This document shows positions 40,562-47,610 of a stretch of 64,000 nt of DNA, in pieces. Where the stretch lies: assembly GCA_965240325.2 (NCBI GenBank), contig OZ251241.1, forward strand, positions 1,302,001 through 1,366,000. The letters are read 5' to 3'. Origin of the DNA: Rebecca billardiae RCC1528 (taxonomy: Eukaryota > Protista > Haptophyta). Numbering within the stretch: position 1 is the stretch's first letter; the number at the start of each line of letters is the position of its first letter. A program made the translations under genes and the position numbers. A model generated the notes under the pieces. The model saw only the letters and a program-made list of their open reading frames with translations, did no database searches and had not been told where the DNA came from.

Positions 40562-41376
40562 TGAGGAGTACTCACTTCACAGTAGGGCGTCCGATCAAAA
40601 TCTTGGCATCCCTAGTCGTTTCGGTAACCACGCGATGACAAGCGCAGATGATCGAAAACCCGCGCGCGGGCGGAGAGAGGTGTCTCGGCTGCAGCCGGTT
40701 CGACTGCAGTTCGTGAGTTATGCCGCCGTGAACGGCGACGCACGAGTCCGCCGGCGCTGTGGCGGTGGTGCCAATGGGAGGGCCTCAACCTGCTCCCAGG
40801 GCTGCCCTCGCCGAGATGCGTCGCGTCTATGATTCCATCCCCGGGTGCAGATGGTCGACGAACGACTCCATGTTAAGCGCGCACGGGGCGATGTCCTGCG
40901 CCTCGCGATGCCTCGACCTCGGGGGCTGCACGAGACGCTCGGGCTGAGCATGCCGGGGGTGGACCCCCTCGACGCGTCGGCGACGCACATGGCCGTGCTC
41001 AAACGCGTCATGCGCTACGTTCCTGTACACATGCGCGACGAACATGGGTGCGTCAGACAGGCGCTGCGCGAGGCATCGCTCCGTAATGATCATATTGCCG
41101 TTGGCCAAATGAGTCGGCACAGCTCATTAGCGTGTCATTAAGCGATCTTTCCTCCCTGACCAGCCTGATTGAGGTACGATGTGGGTAGACAGCAGGCCGC
41201 GAACCTAATCGACATTTATCGACCTATCTCGTGAAGGCCTCTGAAGGGACGCGCTTGCGTGTGGGTCTGAATGAAGGAATCTCCGTATGGTCGACCCAAG
41301 CTTGCGAGCTCTCCAGCGCAGCGCTTCAGTGGTAGGGACTCGGTGTGCGGGCTCGTGGGAGCTCTGGCGGGCTCGC

Positions 41377-44300
41377 ATGGAGCTACTGGGCGCGCGCCAG
41401 CCGTCCACGAGCTTCGCGTGGCGCACATCCACGCCGCAGACGGGCCGACGGCGGCCGCGGCCAACAGCCGCCAGCAGCTGCGGCCTGGTGATCGTCACGG
41501 ACCCGGTGCGCGGCCGCGTGACTGCTGGGCACGGCTGCAGACCCGGCCCACCCGCCCGCGGCGCTGTCGATGCTGATACTCACGCGCGTGTGCGCGCGCG
41601 CGCGCGCGCGCGTCGCTCGCAGGGCCCGGACCCCGACGACGTGAAGGCCTTGCTGATCGCCGCGGTGCTGCACCGGCAGGGCGACCTCACGCTGCACGCG
41701 GTCGTGGCGAACGGCGGATGGCAGGCGCTCAACCGCGCGCGGCTTGCGCGCTGCGTCCTTGACCACGCGGGCGCGCGCGACGTGCCCGTCGGCGTCGGCA
41801 GCCAGGGCAGCAGGGATTACTCGCCCCAGCCGCACGAGTACCGCCTCGCCGGCTTCGACGAGGTGCGCGACGACCTGCTTGAGGACGGCGCCGCGCTGCT
41901 GCTGCGCGTCGTGCACGGCGCCGCGCGCAAGAGCCTCACCGTCGTGTGCATCTCGTCGCTGCGTGACCTCGCGGAGCTGATCGACGCGGAGGCGGAGCTC
42001 GTGCTCGCCAAGGTGCGCGAAATCTCCGTGATGGGTGGGCTCGAGCGGGACGACTCCTCGCCCTCGGGCTGGGTGCCCGACACGTCTGTCAACAACACGG
42101 TGCGCGCGCGCTCGGCGCTCGGCGCGCTCTTCACGTCTCGCGCGCGCTCGGCGCGCGCGCGGTGTGCGTGTGGCGCGAGGCTGCGCGCCGCGCGGCGTGT
42201 GCTCACGCGCGCCCTCGCGCGTGCGCGGCCCCGCTCGCCCGCCCCCTTCGCGCCGCCAGTTCGACATGGACGCGGCGCGCGCCGTGTACGACTTCTGCTT
42301 TGCGCGCGATCTGCCGCTGACCGTCGTCTCGCGGCACGCGGTGCCGATGCTGCCGATGCAGCTGGCGCGCTCGTTCGCGGTGCGCACGGGCGGCGACTGC
42401 CCCGTGATGAGCTACCTCGCCGACGCGCAGTTCCTCGGGCTCGAGGGCCTCTGGCAGAAGATGTGCGAGGGCAAGCTGCCGCCGCGCTGCACGAAGCAGT
42501 GGTACTTTGAGACCTTCTGCGGCGTGGACGCGGAGCGGTTCGGGGCGAGCGGCTTCGACGCGTTCGGCGCGGATGCGGACATCAAGGCGCATCTCAACGG
42601 CTTCGTCAAGCCGTGCGCGCACGCCGCCGAGCGCGCCGCGCGCCGCGCGCCTCGCGCCCCGAGCCCGCCCGGGGGCGCCCCGGCTCACTCGCGCGGCTGC
42701 CGCCCGCCGCGCTCCCGGCCGCGCGCCGTTCGCGCCCACGCGTGTGCGTGCCTGTTCTCGAGCCAGGTACGACGTGGTGGCGCTGATGGCGGTGCTGCCG
42801 CACACGCGCGCGTGCTTCCTGCGCGACGAGTCGTCGAGCTTCCGCACGGGCTCGCAGGGCGGCGCGTCCCACTCGCTCTTCCTCGACGGCGCGCACCAGA
42901 TCGACGTGCGGCACGTGCTGCAGCTGCTCAGGTGCGCGCCAAAGCCGCGGGCGCGGGGTTGCGCGGGCTCGGCGTGGGATTGCGGCTGGCGATGGCCGCG
43001 ACGGCGCGCTGACGCGCGCGTTCGCGTGCGCGCGTGCACAGGGACACGTACCACGAGGTGGTCCTCGCGTCGGCCGCGGAGCTCGTGAGCATGACGGCGA
43101 CCGCGGCCCCCTCGCCTCGGGGCGGGGCGGACGACTCGCAGCGCGGCGGCGGCGGCGCGCACCCCGCCTCGAGCTTCAGCCGTGCGGCGATGGACCCCGC
43201 GCGCGGAGTCGGCCCTGCGGCCTCGGCCGCGCCGGCGCAGGCGCTGCCGGCGGGCGCCACGCAGGGCAGCGCGCGCGCGCCGACCGGTCCGCCCACCGCG
43301 CCGAGCCCGGCGGGATCCGAGCGCGCCGCCGCGTGCGCCGCGCCGGCGCGGGGCGGCGCGGAGCCGCAGCCGCAGCGCGGCGCGGAGCTCGCGTCCGTCC
43401 AGCAGGGCGTGCACGGCGGCGCGCGCGTCGCGCGCGACTCGGAGCCCGGCCGGGCGCCGGGCCGAGCCGCACGGGACACCTCGTCCGGCACGTGGGCCTC
43501 CCAGATGCAGACGCCCGCCATGTCGCACCGCTCCGGCCGCTCGTCCGTGACGCGCAGCTCGGTGTCCTCGGCCTCCACCGGCTCCGCCTCCGCCTCGTTC
43601 AGCTGGCACCCGATGGGCTGGGCGGGCTGTGCGCAGGGCCCCGCCGGCGTGGGCGCGGGCGGCGCGGGCGGCGGTGCGGGCGGCACGCCGCAGCCCGCGT
43701 GCCCACGGCTGCGCGGCCAGGTCGGCTCGCAGCCAATCGCAACGCGGCAGCAGCTGCCGCTGGCGCTGCCCGTCATCGCCGGCTCGGCGCGGGCGAGCAA
43801 GGCGGACGGCGGCGCGGCGCGCCTGTCGTCGGCCAAGTCGTCGGCCAAGTCGACGCCCCCTCGCCGCTCGGACAGCGGCGCGGGCGCGGGCGCGCGCGGC
43901 GCGTCCCGCGCGTCCCGCGCGTCCCGCGCGCGCTCGGGCAGCGGCCTCGGCATGCCGCTCGGCGCGCCCCAGCGCGTCGACGACCTGCTCGACGTGGCCG
44001 CGCTCGAGCGAGAGCCGGGCGAGCCGCTGTCCGAGTCGGCGCTCGCACACGTGCTCGAGGAGGCGCTCTCCGAGGCGCGCTCGGCGCTGCGGCTGCTCTC
44101 GGGCGTGGCGGCGGGGGTCGGCATGGCCCTGCTCTGCGTCGCGCTCGCGCTCTACTCCGCCCACCTCCACCGCAGCGGCGGCGGCAGCCCGGCGGCGATC
44201 GAGTCGGACGAGCGCGCGCTGATCATGGTCGACGTGTCGGGCGCGCTCGGCACGTCTGGCTTTGCGCTGCTGCTCCTCGCCATCTCGCCCTCGCGCTCCT

Positions 44301-45814
44301 TCCTCAACATCGCGCGCTTCGCCACCGCCACGTTCCTCGTGCTGAACGGGGTGACGATGCTGCTGCACGCCCTCGACCTGGCGCGCTACTGGCTGGCCAG
44401 CGGCGCGATCTCGCCCGCGCTCGTCGCGTGGATCGCGGTGCGCGCCGCGGCGCAGCTGGCGATCGGGCACGCGGCGTGGGCGCACTGGCGGCGGTGCGCG
44501 CCGCTTGTGCGCCGGCTGCGGCACGCCACCGCGCTCATGTTCGTGGCCTTGGCCGTGCTCAGCATCTCGAACCGCGCCGCGCTCGGCTGGCTGCGCTCGG
44601 ACGCGGCGGTGGCGGTCAGCGTCGCCGCGCTCGTGTACAGGCTCGGCGTGGCGCTGCTGATGCTGTGGCCGAGCGCGCGCCGGGGCGCGTTTGCCGCGCT
44701 CGCGCGCTGCCTCGAGTCGCGCACCGCCGGCCGGCTTGGCGCCGCCGCGCCGCTCGCGCCGCTGATCGGCTTCGGCACCCGGCACGAGCGAGCGGCGGCG
44801 GAGGTGCTCGCCTCGGCGCGCCGCGCCTTCGCGCCCGTGCCGCTCGACGACGAGGCCATCGAGCAGCTCGTCAGCGCGCCCGCGGACGCGCTGGGCGATC
44901 GCAAGTCGTCCGCCGCGTCGTCGGCGCGCGGCTCCTTCAGCGCCGGCCGCCGAGGGCTGCGCGCCGGCCCGCCGTCGTCCGTCGCGCCGCTCGCGCTCGC
45001 GCTCGCGTTGCGCCGTGGCGACAGCCGCGGCACCACCGACTCGACGGGCGGCGAGAGCGGCGGACGGCCGAGCCTCGAGGACGCGGAGCTGGGCGGCGGC
45101 TCGGCGCGCGTCGCGGCCGCGGCCGCGCAGCCGCTGCCGGTGGCCGACTACTACATCGTGCACTCGGCCGACGACGACGCGGACGCGAAGCGCGCGGCGC
45201 TCGGCGCGTGGGCGCGCGCCAAGGCCGCCGAGACGGGCGTGCGGCCCACCGTGTGGTTCGCCGCGCTGCACGGCCGCTCGCCCACGCGCTCGCGGGAGGC
45301 CCTGCACCACCTGCCCGTGTGCCTCGGCCGCTCGCGCCGGCTGCTGCTCCTCTCGGGGCCGAGCGTCACCGACCAGCTCTGGTGCATCGCAGAGCTGTAC
45401 GCGTGGCGGCTGCTCGGCGGGAGCGACGCGGAGGTGGAGTCGCTGTGCGTCGCCACCTCGGCGGACGCGCGCGAGCGCACGCTCGCCTCGTTCGACGCGT
45501 TCGCGGTGATGTACGCGCACCGCGCGCCCTCGGCGGAGGACCGCGCGCGCATCGTGCGCGCGGTCGAGCTCGCGAGCGTGCGCCGCGTGAACGAGGCCGT
45601 GCGCTCGTACCTGCAGGTCGCGCGCCGCGCGCAAGACCGGCAGGCGCTGCAGCGCGCCGCGGGGCTCGAATCGGACGAGCCGCCGGCAGACGACGCGCCG
45701 GCCGGGACGCCGCCGCCGCCGCCGCGCGCGCCTCGCGCGCCGCAGGCCGGCGGCTCGACGCCGGCCGCCGGCGTCGTCGACGCCGGCGGCAGCGCTCCTG
45801 ACGAGCTGTGCTGA
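41377..45814 (+). CDS. Nucleoside hydrolase-like domain + low-complexity linker + ~6 TM helices + TIR-like domain; 5 exons
   Basis: Exons 41377-41505, 41623-42099, 42260-42612, 42767-42931 and 43042-45814, all GT-AG and frame-consistent. NH motifs VIVTDP|GPDPDD, VPVGVG, ISVMGG, NNT|FDMDAA and YDVVAL. TIR-like DYYIVHS...VWF...LPVCLGRSRRLLLLSGPSVTDQLWCIAEL. Confidence 0.75.
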
Positions 45815-46351: not shown

Positions 46352-47329
46352 TCAGACGAAGATGCGGTTGAATTGGGTACAGACGGCACGACACACGGGA
46401 CACCTTGCCTCGCCGCTGGAGCCGATTCGCTTGCTGTCGGCTTCGCACAAACACCGATGGCCGCAGGGCAGGCATGCCACGACGGCGTCGGCGTCCAGGC
46501 ACACGATGCAGATGTGCGCGGGTGGTCTTTGGCCCTGCGCAGCAGGAAGGTCTGCAGGTGCGTGCAGCTCGGACCCGGCGCCTGTGCCAGGCTTGCATCC
46601 CTTGCCGTGGAGTCCGTATTTGGCGCGGATGCGCTCAGCATGGGACGGGACAGGCGCACTGTACGCTGAGGGCTGCTCGGCGCCTTGGCCGATCACAGCC
46701 GAGGCCGACGAGATCGCGTTGGCGAGCCAGCTCGAGGCGTCCAGCGCGGGCGAGGCCGAAGCTGGCAGCAGGGGCACCTGCTCTTTCGGTGCTGTGCACA
46801 GCTTGCACACGATGGTCGGCTCGAGGTACCCCAGCCCAGGGAGGGTGTCCGCAGTGCTCGAGCACATGCGGCACACACAGAACCCGCAGCGTCTGCAGTG
46901 GTGCCGCCGGAGCAGCACGTTGAATCGTCGCTGGCAGACGTTGCAGCCTGCCTGATCTGCCCAGCGCGGGCGTATTGCGTGTGTGAGAGCCACTTGCCAC
47001 GCGCGCAGTTCGGGCAGGCCACTGCGCGCGCGCATCCGCCATGCTACGCCAACGTGAGGTATTGCCAGCACAAGCACGTGCCCGTCCTCATCCGCACAGA
47101 TGTCCGCAGTGCAGTCGTTGGTGATGTCCACGGATTGGCGGGCAGCGTTGTCCTCTGCATCGAGCTCACGGTAGGCGAGCCGGCGGTCGTGCAGGACAAA
47201 GTGTCGTTCGACCCAGCGCCGACGACCACCGTCGCCCTGCTTGATGAGGATGCCCTCCTTCTTCACCGGCTCGCCAGCCTCCTCCTCGTGCGCCAGGCAC
47301 GGACAGCACTTGAGGAGCTCCGACGGCAT
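46352..47329 (-). CDS. PH + FYVE + RING(C3HC4-type) protein
   Basis: PH: KKEGILIKQG...WVERHFVL...ELRAWQVAL. FYVE: WADQAGCNVC..F....RRHHCRRCG..VC..CS...VCKLC. RING: CIVCLD...LPCGHRCLC...CPVCR. Confidence 0.9.
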   Translation of the reverse strand: MPSELLKCCPCLAHEEEAGEPVKKEGILIKQGDGGRRRWVERHFVLHDRRLAYRELDAEDNAARQSVDITNDCTADICADEDGHVLVLAIPHVGVAWRMRARSGLPELRAWQVALTHAIRPRWADQAGCNVCQRRFNVLLRRHHCRRCGFCVCRMCSSTADTLPGLGYLEPTIVCKLCTAPKEQVPLLPASASPALDASSWLANAISSASAVIGQGAEQPSAYSAPVPSHAERIRAKYGLHGKGCKPGTGAGSELHAPADLPAAQGQRPPAHICIVCLDADAVVACLPCGHRCLCEADSKRIGSSGEARCPVCRAVCTQFNRIFV

Positions 47330-47610
47330 TCCTGAAGAGGGAGCGCGTCCCAGCCAGCCCTTCGGCTTTCGAGGACCGGAGTCACGGGGGCCGGACCCAG
47401 CCGAGATGCGCACGAAACGGTAGTCACTATCAGCATGGCGGCGTGCTAAGGCGCTGCGGCTTTCTCTCTCAACTTTGACCTGTGGCATGTGCGAGAGACA
47501 GGATCGCGCACACCCATGGGCGCCGTGTGGTGCATCTGCTCTGCGCGCGCCGAGACGGACCAATCCTACAGTAGACGATTCCGCGCGTCAATCCGCGCTG
47601 AGACGCCCGT

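Follow-up and report, generated by a model that had tools for sequence, protein, structure and literature searches.

A predicted membrane protein of the haptophyte Rebecca billardiae fuses a XopQ/HopQ1-like hydrolase domain to a divergent TIR/HET-like domain and belongs to a large paralogue family

Introduction

The effectors XopQ (Xanthomonas) and HopQ1 (Pseudomonas syringae), which form part of the HLP clade of Pfam family PF01156, were orphan enzymes for two decades before a preprint of 2026. That work reported that XopQ acts on the TIR product 2'cADPR, an isomer of cyclic adenosine diphosphate ribose, hydrolysing its ribose-ribose O-glycosidic bond to release adenosine diphosphate ribose (ADPR), that XopQ and HopQ1 have no nucleosidase activity, and that the substitutions D120N and D399N abolish XopQ activity (10.64898/2026.06.15.732069). 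In this study, we have explored a putative eukaryotic relative of these effectors, encoded in a 64,000-nucleotide stretch of the genome of the haptophyte Rebecca billardiae RCC1528 (assembly GCA_965240325.2, contig OZ251241.1, positions 1,302,001 to 1,366,000; hereafter the window). The gene in question is predicted to encode a XopQ/HopQ1-like hydrolase domain, a low-complexity linker, six hydrophobic segments and a C-terminal TIR/HET-like domain in a single protein.

Two further groups of described proteins matter for the comparison. In the TIR domains that act as NADases, among them plant TIRs and SARM1, the catalytic glutamate lies in the helix after the third strand. HET (PF06985) is a fungal cell-death module remotely related to TIR, with the consensus motif W-I-D-x-x-C-I-x-Q. 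Fungal HET families have undergone lineage-specific expansion to 50-150 copies (PMC10197012). In haptophytes, multi-transmembrane (TM) TIR genes of Gephyrocapsa huxleyi respond to infection by the virus EhV (PMC12489294). HopQ1-like proteins were recorded in algae in 2018, including haptophytes and heterokonts, without mention of TIR or membrane fusions (PMC6019455), and our full-text search of the literature yielded no account in which a XopQ/HopQ1-like domain is joined to a TIR or HET-like one.

Results

The N-terminal domain resembles XopQ and HopQ1

The N-terminal domain of the window copy is spread over four exons, and the domain matches of this copy were obtained exon by exon. Exon 2 alone passed the Pfam model PF01156 (IU_nuc_hydro) with 43.1 bits, above the cut-off of 34.2 (E 5.6e-11). 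Searched against the PDB, the same exon retrieved XopQ structures only (E 9e-7), as did exon 3 (7jlu_B residues 297-400, E 4e-6), and the two exons match consecutive segments of the XopQ chain. The family profile matched the XopQ entries 4kl0, 4p5f and 7jlu at E 1e-37 over about 310 residues (profile positions 3-308), whereas its similarity to classical nucleoside hydrolases reached E 5e-9 to 1e-4 and covered only profile positions 4-176, the N-terminal half. The evidence at the level of the fold comes from a paralogue without introns, L024, whose AlphaFold2 (AF2) model has a predicted local distance difference test score (pLDDT) of 86. This model matched XopQ 4p5f with E 6e-21 and a TM-score of 0.74-0.77, against a best E of 6e-12 and a TM-score of about 0.6 for classical nucleoside hydrolases. 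XopQ and HopQ1 are by far the best whole-domain match in both sequence and fold.

The active-site motifs point in the same direction. The window sequence TDP|GPDPDD (the bar marks the exon junction) aligns to TDPNKDPDD of XopQ and so displays the non-canonical calcium-binding motif D-x-x-x-D-x-D-D. The canonical D-x-D-x-x-x-D-D is absent, as the window copy reads V-T-D-P-G-P-D-P-D-D, with a residue other than Asp at the first Asp position and with the spacing of XopQ. From the alignment to 7jlu_B (tag offset 13), the equivalents of XopQ D120 and D399 are Asp 41629-41631 in exon 2 and Asp 42771-42773 in exon 4, and both are retained. The window domain thus has in common with XopQ and HopQ1 the calcium motif, the two aspartates and an NN..D motif. 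Unlike these secreted effectors, the window protein is endogenous to a eukaryote, is linked through six predicted TM segments to a TIR-like domain, and has dozens of paralogues.

Judged by these similarities, the N-terminal domain is a member of the HopQ1/XopQ-like clade and not a generic or classical IU nucleoside hydrolase. A first-pass annotation, made from the letters of the sequence, had named it a nucleoside hydrolase of the IU type. The family assignment stands, since exon 2 passes PF01156; the N-ribosidase chemistry that goes with the classical enzymes probably does not, as XopQ is reported to cut an O-glycosidic bond and to lack nucleosidase activity.

One gene encodes both domains

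Read directly from the + strand, the five exons and four introns between 41377 and 45814 join into 3897 nt, or 1298 codons, with zero internal stops. The five-exon model is a prediction, and the joined protein was measured for length, stops and G+C content by codon position. All four introns start with GTGCGC and end with CAG, and their reading phases agree. The region has a G+C content of 72-78%, and the five-exon frame has G+C fractions of 0.75, 0.60 and 0.96 at codon positions 1, 2 and 3. The low-complexity linker is coding as well, because its third-position G+C (GC3) of 0.95 is like that of the rest of the gene. Retention of intron 4 would bring a stop after 52 codons. A second in-frame ATG lies at 41287, 90 nt (30 codons) 5' of the proposed start at 41377, and the short N-terminal extensions of the homologues favour the latter.

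Several observations support the joining of these exons. A word search with the membrane and C-terminal part retrieved two relatives: P0001, a complete transcript-derived protein of 1054 amino acids from MMETSP, which carries the entire architecture in one open reading frame derived from mRNA, and P0002, a protein of Diacronema lutheri whose model is truncated N-terminally. Aligned with P0001, other homologues and the paralogues, exons 2, 3 and 4 and the beginning of exon 5 follow on from one another with neither gap nor overlap, and the junctions read SVNNT|FDMDAA, GFVKP|YDVVALM and HVLQLLR|DTYHEVVL, the last of which parallels LLRETYHEAVL of P0001 and of the intronless paralogues. Across the exon 1/2 junction, the intronless paralogues read LITDPGPDPDD, and ITDPGPDPDD is likewise unbroken in homologues derived from cDNA. 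Because of this seamless tiling, we conclude that all four junctions reproduce conserved protein sequence. In the same genome, both domains also lie inside one uninterrupted frame of 1042-1336 amino acids in the paralogues L023, L024, L025 and others (for example C21:1048157-1051678 and C18:947981-951397). An intron is found in several paralogues at the same position of the hidden Markov model (about 16/17) as intron 1 of the window copy.

From these comparisons, the fusion of hydrolase, membrane block and TIR-like domain within one protein is real. The architecture proposed in the first-pass annotation, with four in-frame GT-AG introns, a TDPGPDPDD motif split by the first of them, about six TM helices and a TIR-like domain in the same protein, is supported, and this extends to the 42931/43042 junction that it had doubted, where the spliced sequence rebuilds a conserved helix of the hydrolase.

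The C-terminal domain has a TIR fold and HET-like motifs

The AF2 model of the C-terminal domain, built from an alignment of 65 sequences, reached a pLDDT of 93.3. All of the top 50 Foldseek matches in the PDB were TIR domains (50/50). The top entries in VIA-align were also all TIR, led by the plant TIR domains of RUN1 and RPP1 (Z 10.6, root-mean-square deviation (rmsd) 3.6 Å, 137-139 residues) and followed by SARM1, MyD88, AbTir, ThsB and SPARTA (Z 8.5-9.6). Taken over the TIR NADases and cyclases (RUN1/RPP1/RPS4, SARM1, ThsB, AbTir and the SPARTA TIR-APAZ), the fold is shared with Z of 8.5-10.6 and an rmsd of about 3-3.7 Å over 115-139 residues. The C-terminal TIR-like domain that the first-pass annotation had recognised is therefore borne out by the predicted fold.

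At the level of sequence the relationship is more remote. The best three PDB matches of the profile were TIR domains of TLR15/2 and SIGIRR (E 0.03-0.045), with an alignment in register at strand A and at LLxLxGPxxxxxLWCxxELY, which sets the window Glu opposite that of TLR WCqyEL. This Glu, in LWCIAELY, is encoded at 45392-45394 and is E90 of the domain, within the helix 85-96 that follows the third strand. Its place in this helix and the WCxxEL-type motif are shared with the TIR NADases and cyclases, and the residue that the first-pass annotation had equated with the TIR catalytic Glu is thus present. Over 65 members of the family, Pfam returned TIR_2 in 17 (best E 8.9e-6), HET in 11 (at E up to 1, best 0.044), TIR in three and ThsB_TIR in one, and the Glu is found in 50 of these 65 diverse sequences. 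The TIR_2 matches support, by transitivity, a remote TIR homology of the window copy. No match to Pfam HET was found for the window copy; the only Pfam match in the scan of the C-terminal domain and exon 5, to UreF (E 0.039), was discarded as being at chance level. Its neighbours in the Atlas are haptophyte clusters with automatic names that refer to TIR or to heterokaryon incompatibility, the latter being the name of the nearest cluster. Among 1.84 billion representatives, a profile search returned 1928 related clusters at E 1e-3 or better, and at least 22 of the top 150 also bear a XopQ-like domain.

The family consensus lies close to that of the fungal module, with Y-V-V-H-S-W, W-L-D-x-x-C-x-D(Q) and L-W-C-x-x-E in parallel to the HET pattern. 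It differs from HET in that the best family E is 0.044, with TIR_2 scoring better, in that the window copy has lost W-x-D-x-x-C, and in that the host is an alga. It also differs from animal and plant TIRs in its strand A (D-x-Y-V-V-H-S-W-x-D-D), in the lack of the Glu in half of the paralogues and in the window copy's missing Pfam TIR match. The HET motif (W-I-D-x-x-C-I-x-Q type, after strand B) is absent from the window copy, which reads V-W-F-A-A-L-H-G-R there. From sequence and model together, the C-terminal domain is a divergent member of the TIR/HET superfamily, lying by sequence between Pfam TIR_2 and HET. The first-pass annotation had described the first strands of the domain as degenerate. 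This does not hold for YYIVHS, which fits the family strand-A consensus D-x-Y-V-V-H-S(-W-x-D-D); it does hold for VWFAALHGR.

The same domain occurs in other company. There are about 80 loci of the C-terminal domain without the hydrolase in this genome, and among the fold neighbours in the Atlas it is joined to heme-NO-binding (HNOB) domains (haptophytes) or to arrays of tetratricopeptide repeats (TPR; oomycetes). A pattern scan of viral contigs, an insensitive method, found no relative of the C-terminal domain or of the hydrolase domain of the paralogues.

Six hydrophobic segments probably keep both domains in the cytosol

A hydropathy scan detected six segments in the membrane block, and six was also the commonest count among the homologues (8/15). 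Together with the sequence of the disordered Ser/Ala/Gly linker, whose length differs between paralogues, this agrees with the first-pass annotation, as does the consequence that it drew from an even number of helices. Both ends of the protein, and with them both soluble domains, are probably cytosolic: this arrangement is favoured because the Lys and Arg residues are unevenly distributed, with 12 on the side that would be cytosolic in an N-in/C-in orientation and 4 on the opposite loops. There is no N-terminal signal peptide. The membrane block matched no Pfam family, and in the Atlas it matched generic bacterial membrane clusters only (at most 0.81). As TM5 and TM6 are 7 residues apart, we also thought of a Kv/TRP-type pore-loop channel, but dropped this idea.

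The gene belongs to a large and diverging family

The first-pass annotation did not know the architecture from any characterised protein. It is not singular, with about 56 paralogues in this genome and more in other Pavlovales. The genome that we searched comprises 72 Mb in 41 contigs; the profile of the C-terminal domain gave 149 matches in it, and exon 2 gave 87. At 56 hydrolase loci, the C-terminal domain follows 1.6-9 kb downstream on the same strand (median gap 2.6 kb); about 80 loci of the C-terminal domain and 23 of the hydrolase are unpaired. Named homologues elsewhere are all from Pavlovales (Diacronema lutheri, Pavlovales sp. CCMP2436) or from MMETSP transcripts, and the databases list them as hypothetical or under the name 'inosine/uridine-preferring nucleoside hydrolase domain-containing protein'.

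A census of residues covered 39 of the about 56 paired loci (38 paralogues and the window copy), and each of the 39 has a complete hydrolase and a complete C-terminal domain on the same strand. The equivalent of D120 is Asp in all 28 readable copies and that of D399 in 35 of 38, and the two positions of the NN motif are Asn in 39/39 and 37/39. For W-x-D-x-x-C-x-D, the first Asp is present in 31/39, the Cys in 31/39 and the last Asp in 37/39. Pairs of copies are on average 57% identical in the hydrolase domain and 42% in the C-terminal domain, so that the XopQ-type hydrolase is the conserved part of the protein and the TIR-like domain the variable one. A tree built without the Glu columns needs about six changes for the loss of the Glu. 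A transposon-borne multi-copy gene was rejected as an explanation for the copy number, since the hydrolase domains are 43-90% identical, the terminal branches are long, intron positions are shared in part and the loci are scattered. The at least 56 paired loci, the about 80 further loci of the C-terminal domain and their fast divergence suggest the dynamics of a conflict-type family.

Some details of the genomic arrangement are recorded here. No paralogue lies within 900 kb of the window copy; small clusters of paralogues 10-22 kb apart occur elsewhere (C15:1641299/1651401, C22:251912/274470, C17:1280453/1297256, C29:245473/261955). Three near-identical copies (L047, L050 and L055, with terminal branches of 0.04-0.06) all have Gly in place of the TIR Glu, and two of them have lost the D399-equivalent Asp (KPYA). 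They look like a recently amplified subgroup, which is possibly decaying. The 23 XopQ-like loci without a downstream C-terminal domain (36-49% identity to exon 2; for example C23:525088, C12:2177683, C15:880827, C27:158100 and C16:1321116) often lie in open frames of 1000-2400 amino acids, and those in very long frames probably represent fusions of other kinds. Distinct from the C-terminal domain family are about 10 canonical Pfam TIR_2 loci with scores above the cut-off (for example C13:293189, C5:1949398, C34:1015527 and C13:1545865), some with two TIR_2 matches in one frame.

The features of the window copy are collected in Table 1. Its four introns, of 110-160 nt each, have a G+C content of 82%. 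Downstream, on the - strand at 46352-47563, lies an apparently unrelated frame of 403 amino acids in which a FYVE-type zinc-finger motif (RRHHCRRCG...) and a C-terminal RING-like CxxC...CPVCR can be recognised by eye.

Table 1. Predicted features of the fusion gene (positions in the window)
Feature	Positions	Strand	Description
Exon 1	41377..41505	+	Start codon; 38-residue N-terminal extension without hydrophobic signal peptide; first half of calcium-binding motif (..VIVTDP)
Intron 1	41506..41622	+	117 nt, GTGCGC..CAG, phase 0; (GC)n run at about 41590-41612
Exon 2	41623..42099	+	N-terminal half of XopQ/HopQ1-like hydrolase domain (GPDPDD...SVNNT)
Intron 2	42100..42259	+	160 nt, GTGCGC..CAG, phase 0; NNT|FD junction corresponds to NNxFD of homologues
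Exon 3	42260..42612	+	C-terminal half of hydrolase domain; common to XopQ, not to classical nucleoside hydrolases
Intron 3	42613..42766	+	154 nt, GTGCGC..CAG, phase 2; splicing yields VKP|YD, which all homologues share
Exon 4	42767..42931	+	End of hydrolase domain (YDVVALM...HVLQLL)
Intron 4	42932..43041	+	110 nt, GTGCGC..CAG, phase 2
Exon 5	43042..45814	+	Last hydrolase helix, linker, six hydrophobic segments, TIR/HET-like domain, tail; TGA stop 45812-45814
Exon 5, first part	43042..44092	+	Last hydrolase helix (DTYHEVVL), then Ser/Ala/Gly/Arg/Pro-rich low-complexity linker of about 330 residues; no Pfam match
Membrane module	44093..44671	+	Six hydrophobic segments, exon-5 residues about 351-543
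Juxtamembrane linker	44672..45142	+	Between TM6 and C-terminal domain; no match in family search
TIR/HET-like C-terminal domain	45143..45640	+	AF2 fold, Foldseek, VIA-align
C-terminal tail	45641..45814	+	Pro/Ala-rich; includes stop codon TGA 45812-45814

Discussion

The comparison of this gene with XopQ and its paralogues offers a starting point for its function. We propose, tentatively and with slightly less than even confidence, that the protein is a membrane-bound hydrolase of a cyclic-ADPR-type TIR signal, coupled in cis to a TIR-like domain that would either make the signal or dock the enzyme. Given the reaction reported for XopQ, a host-encoded hydrolase of a cyclic ADPR isomer is the most economical reading of the N-terminal domain. 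The protein would thus be a membrane-bound module of nucleotide signalling derived from NAD, in which the TIR-like domain may self-associate or join other TIR-type proteins. In copies with an intact Glu, including the window copy, this domain may cleave NAD+ to a cyclic ADPR isomer, and the XopQ-like domain, a putative calcium-dependent glycohydrolase anchored in cis to that membrane, would hydrolyse the ribose-ribose bond of the product (2'cADPR-like to ADPR). Such hydrolysis could set the lifetime or the threshold of the signal, or convert it into another one. In copies without the Glu, and possibly in the window copy, which does not have W-x-D-x-x-C-x-D, the TIR-like domain would instead dock the enzyme onto TIR assemblies, and the canonical TIR_2 loci of this genome could supply the signal. 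The first-pass annotation had suggested a pair of writer and eraser; this idea gains a precedent from the XopQ/HopQ1-like domain, though in another form, as the chemistry that it assumed was that of an N-ribosidase and XopQ cuts an O-glycosidic bond.

Similar logic is known from elsewhere. Phage and pathogen enzymes that break down TIR signals, together with Thoeris type VI (2'cADPR signalling), show the same combination of maker and breaker for a cyclic ADPR isomer. There, the breaker comes from the attacker and acts in trans, whereas in the window gene both would reside in one host polypeptide. The multi-TM TIR proteins of G. huxleyi share with the window protein, by description only, a haptophyte origin and several TM helices N-terminal to a cytosolic TIR domain with the Glu, but are reported without a hydrolase domain.

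Several points weigh against this proposal. Identity to XopQ is only about 25%, and because of this the substrate specificity of the window domain may differ; the activity of XopQ on 2'cADPR is itself known from a single preprint, and the topology comes from crude hydropathy only. The window copy matches no Pfam TIR model, even at E up to 10. Where the family has W-L-D-x-x-C-x-D it reads VWFAALHGR. The three polar positions of the motif are filled by A, H and R, residues that are found at their respective positions in a single one of the 39 paralogues each. The TIR Glu is retained in 18/39 paralogues and absent in 21/39, so that NADase activity of the TIR-like domain cannot hold for every member of the family. 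Moreover, a clade of 10 paralogues (99% support) is entirely without the Glu, and yet its frames are open and its hydrolase residues kept, from which we infer a Glu-independent role of the C-terminal domain in part of the family. The catalytic competence of the TIR-like domain across the family is thus doubtful.

These same observations lead to the most serious alternative, namely that the XopQ-like domain is the sole enzyme and that the TIR-like domain, itself non-catalytic, serves for docking or assembly and brings the hydrolase to TIR assemblies of other proteins. The family would then consist of negative regulators, or guards against autoimmunity, of TIR signalling. The near invariance of the hydrolase residues beside a TIR Glu kept in fewer than half of the copies, the intact clade without Glu, the lower identity of the C-terminal domain and the divergent motif of the window copy all fit this explanation, and the canonical TIR_2 loci together with the about 80 other loci of the C-terminal domain could make the signal. 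However, the window copy and 17 other paralogues hold the Glu in the correct helix, and its presence in most of the diverse family members speaks for catalysis in some of them at least; we regard this alternative as possible but on the unlikely side. The two domains could also work in the opposite order, the XopQ-like domain mainly binding a nucleotide signal and then switching on the TIR/HET-like domain as an effector of cell death or NAD depletion at the membrane. The XopQ crystal structure 4p5f contains bound ADPR, and the consensus of the C-terminal domain resembles the HET motif, both of which are in line with such a sensor. Against it, the strict retention of the two catalytic aspartates and of the NN..D motif points to turnover and not to binding alone, and the would-be effector is the less conserved part of the protein, and we consider this arrangement improbable.

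The remaining two explanations would take the protein out of TIR signalling altogether or dissolve it into parts. Housekeeping nucleoside salvage, by a membrane-anchored IU-type nucleoside hydrolase with a C-terminal domain of unrelated structural role, could be suspected from the Pfam score of exon 2 and from databases that label some homologues as IU nucleoside hydrolase domain-containing. The similarity to classical nucleoside hydrolases is nevertheless some 30 orders of magnitude below that to XopQ, the enzymes XopQ and HopQ1 showed no nucleosidase activity, and a family of about 56 diverging members, every one coupled to a TIR-like domain, is not the pattern of a housekeeping gene, all of which makes salvage quite improbable. 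As for an artefact, an ATG at about 43091 in the frame of exon 5 would allow two adjacent genes, a hydrolase that stops at 43088 in a retained intron 4 and a membrane-TIR gene that starts in exon 5; a pseudogene would be the other form of the same objection. Since LLR|DTYHEVVL rebuilds the hydrolase helix of a transcript-derived homologue and of intronless paralogues, since all 39 analysed loci pair both domains on one strand, and since the frame is open with coding GC3 throughout, we see hardly any room for this explanation.

Returning to the proposal of a membrane-bound signal hydrolase, its biological setting may be considered. An immune or self/non-self role is plausible because the family is large and divergent, because HET has expanded in a parallel way in fungi and because multi-TM TIR genes of another haptophyte respond to a virus. 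A receptor or antiviral role, which the first-pass annotation had mentioned, is purely conjectural. A broader hypothesis would be that pavlovophytes have an endogenous 2'cADPR-like TIR signalling, with maker and breaker in one membrane protein and at least 50 paralogues as an immune or self/non-self repertoire; this we regard as a rather doubtful but conceivable extension.

In conclusion, a single algal genome joins a XopQ-type domain to a TIR-like domain about 56 times over, which provides independent genomic evidence for a shared pathway of the two activities. It suggests that signalling by cyclic ADPR isomers is not confined to plants and bacteria and extends to a major marine phytoplankton group. 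The family represents a set of ready-made proteins for studying how such a signal is switched off by a host and not by a pathogen, and its paralogues with and without the Glu serve as a natural experiment in which TIR-like domains that catalyse can be compared with those that act as scaffolds. If the broader hypothesis were true, plant pathogens would possess, in their XopQ effectors, the bacterial equivalent of an ancient enzyme with which eukaryotes terminate the signal.

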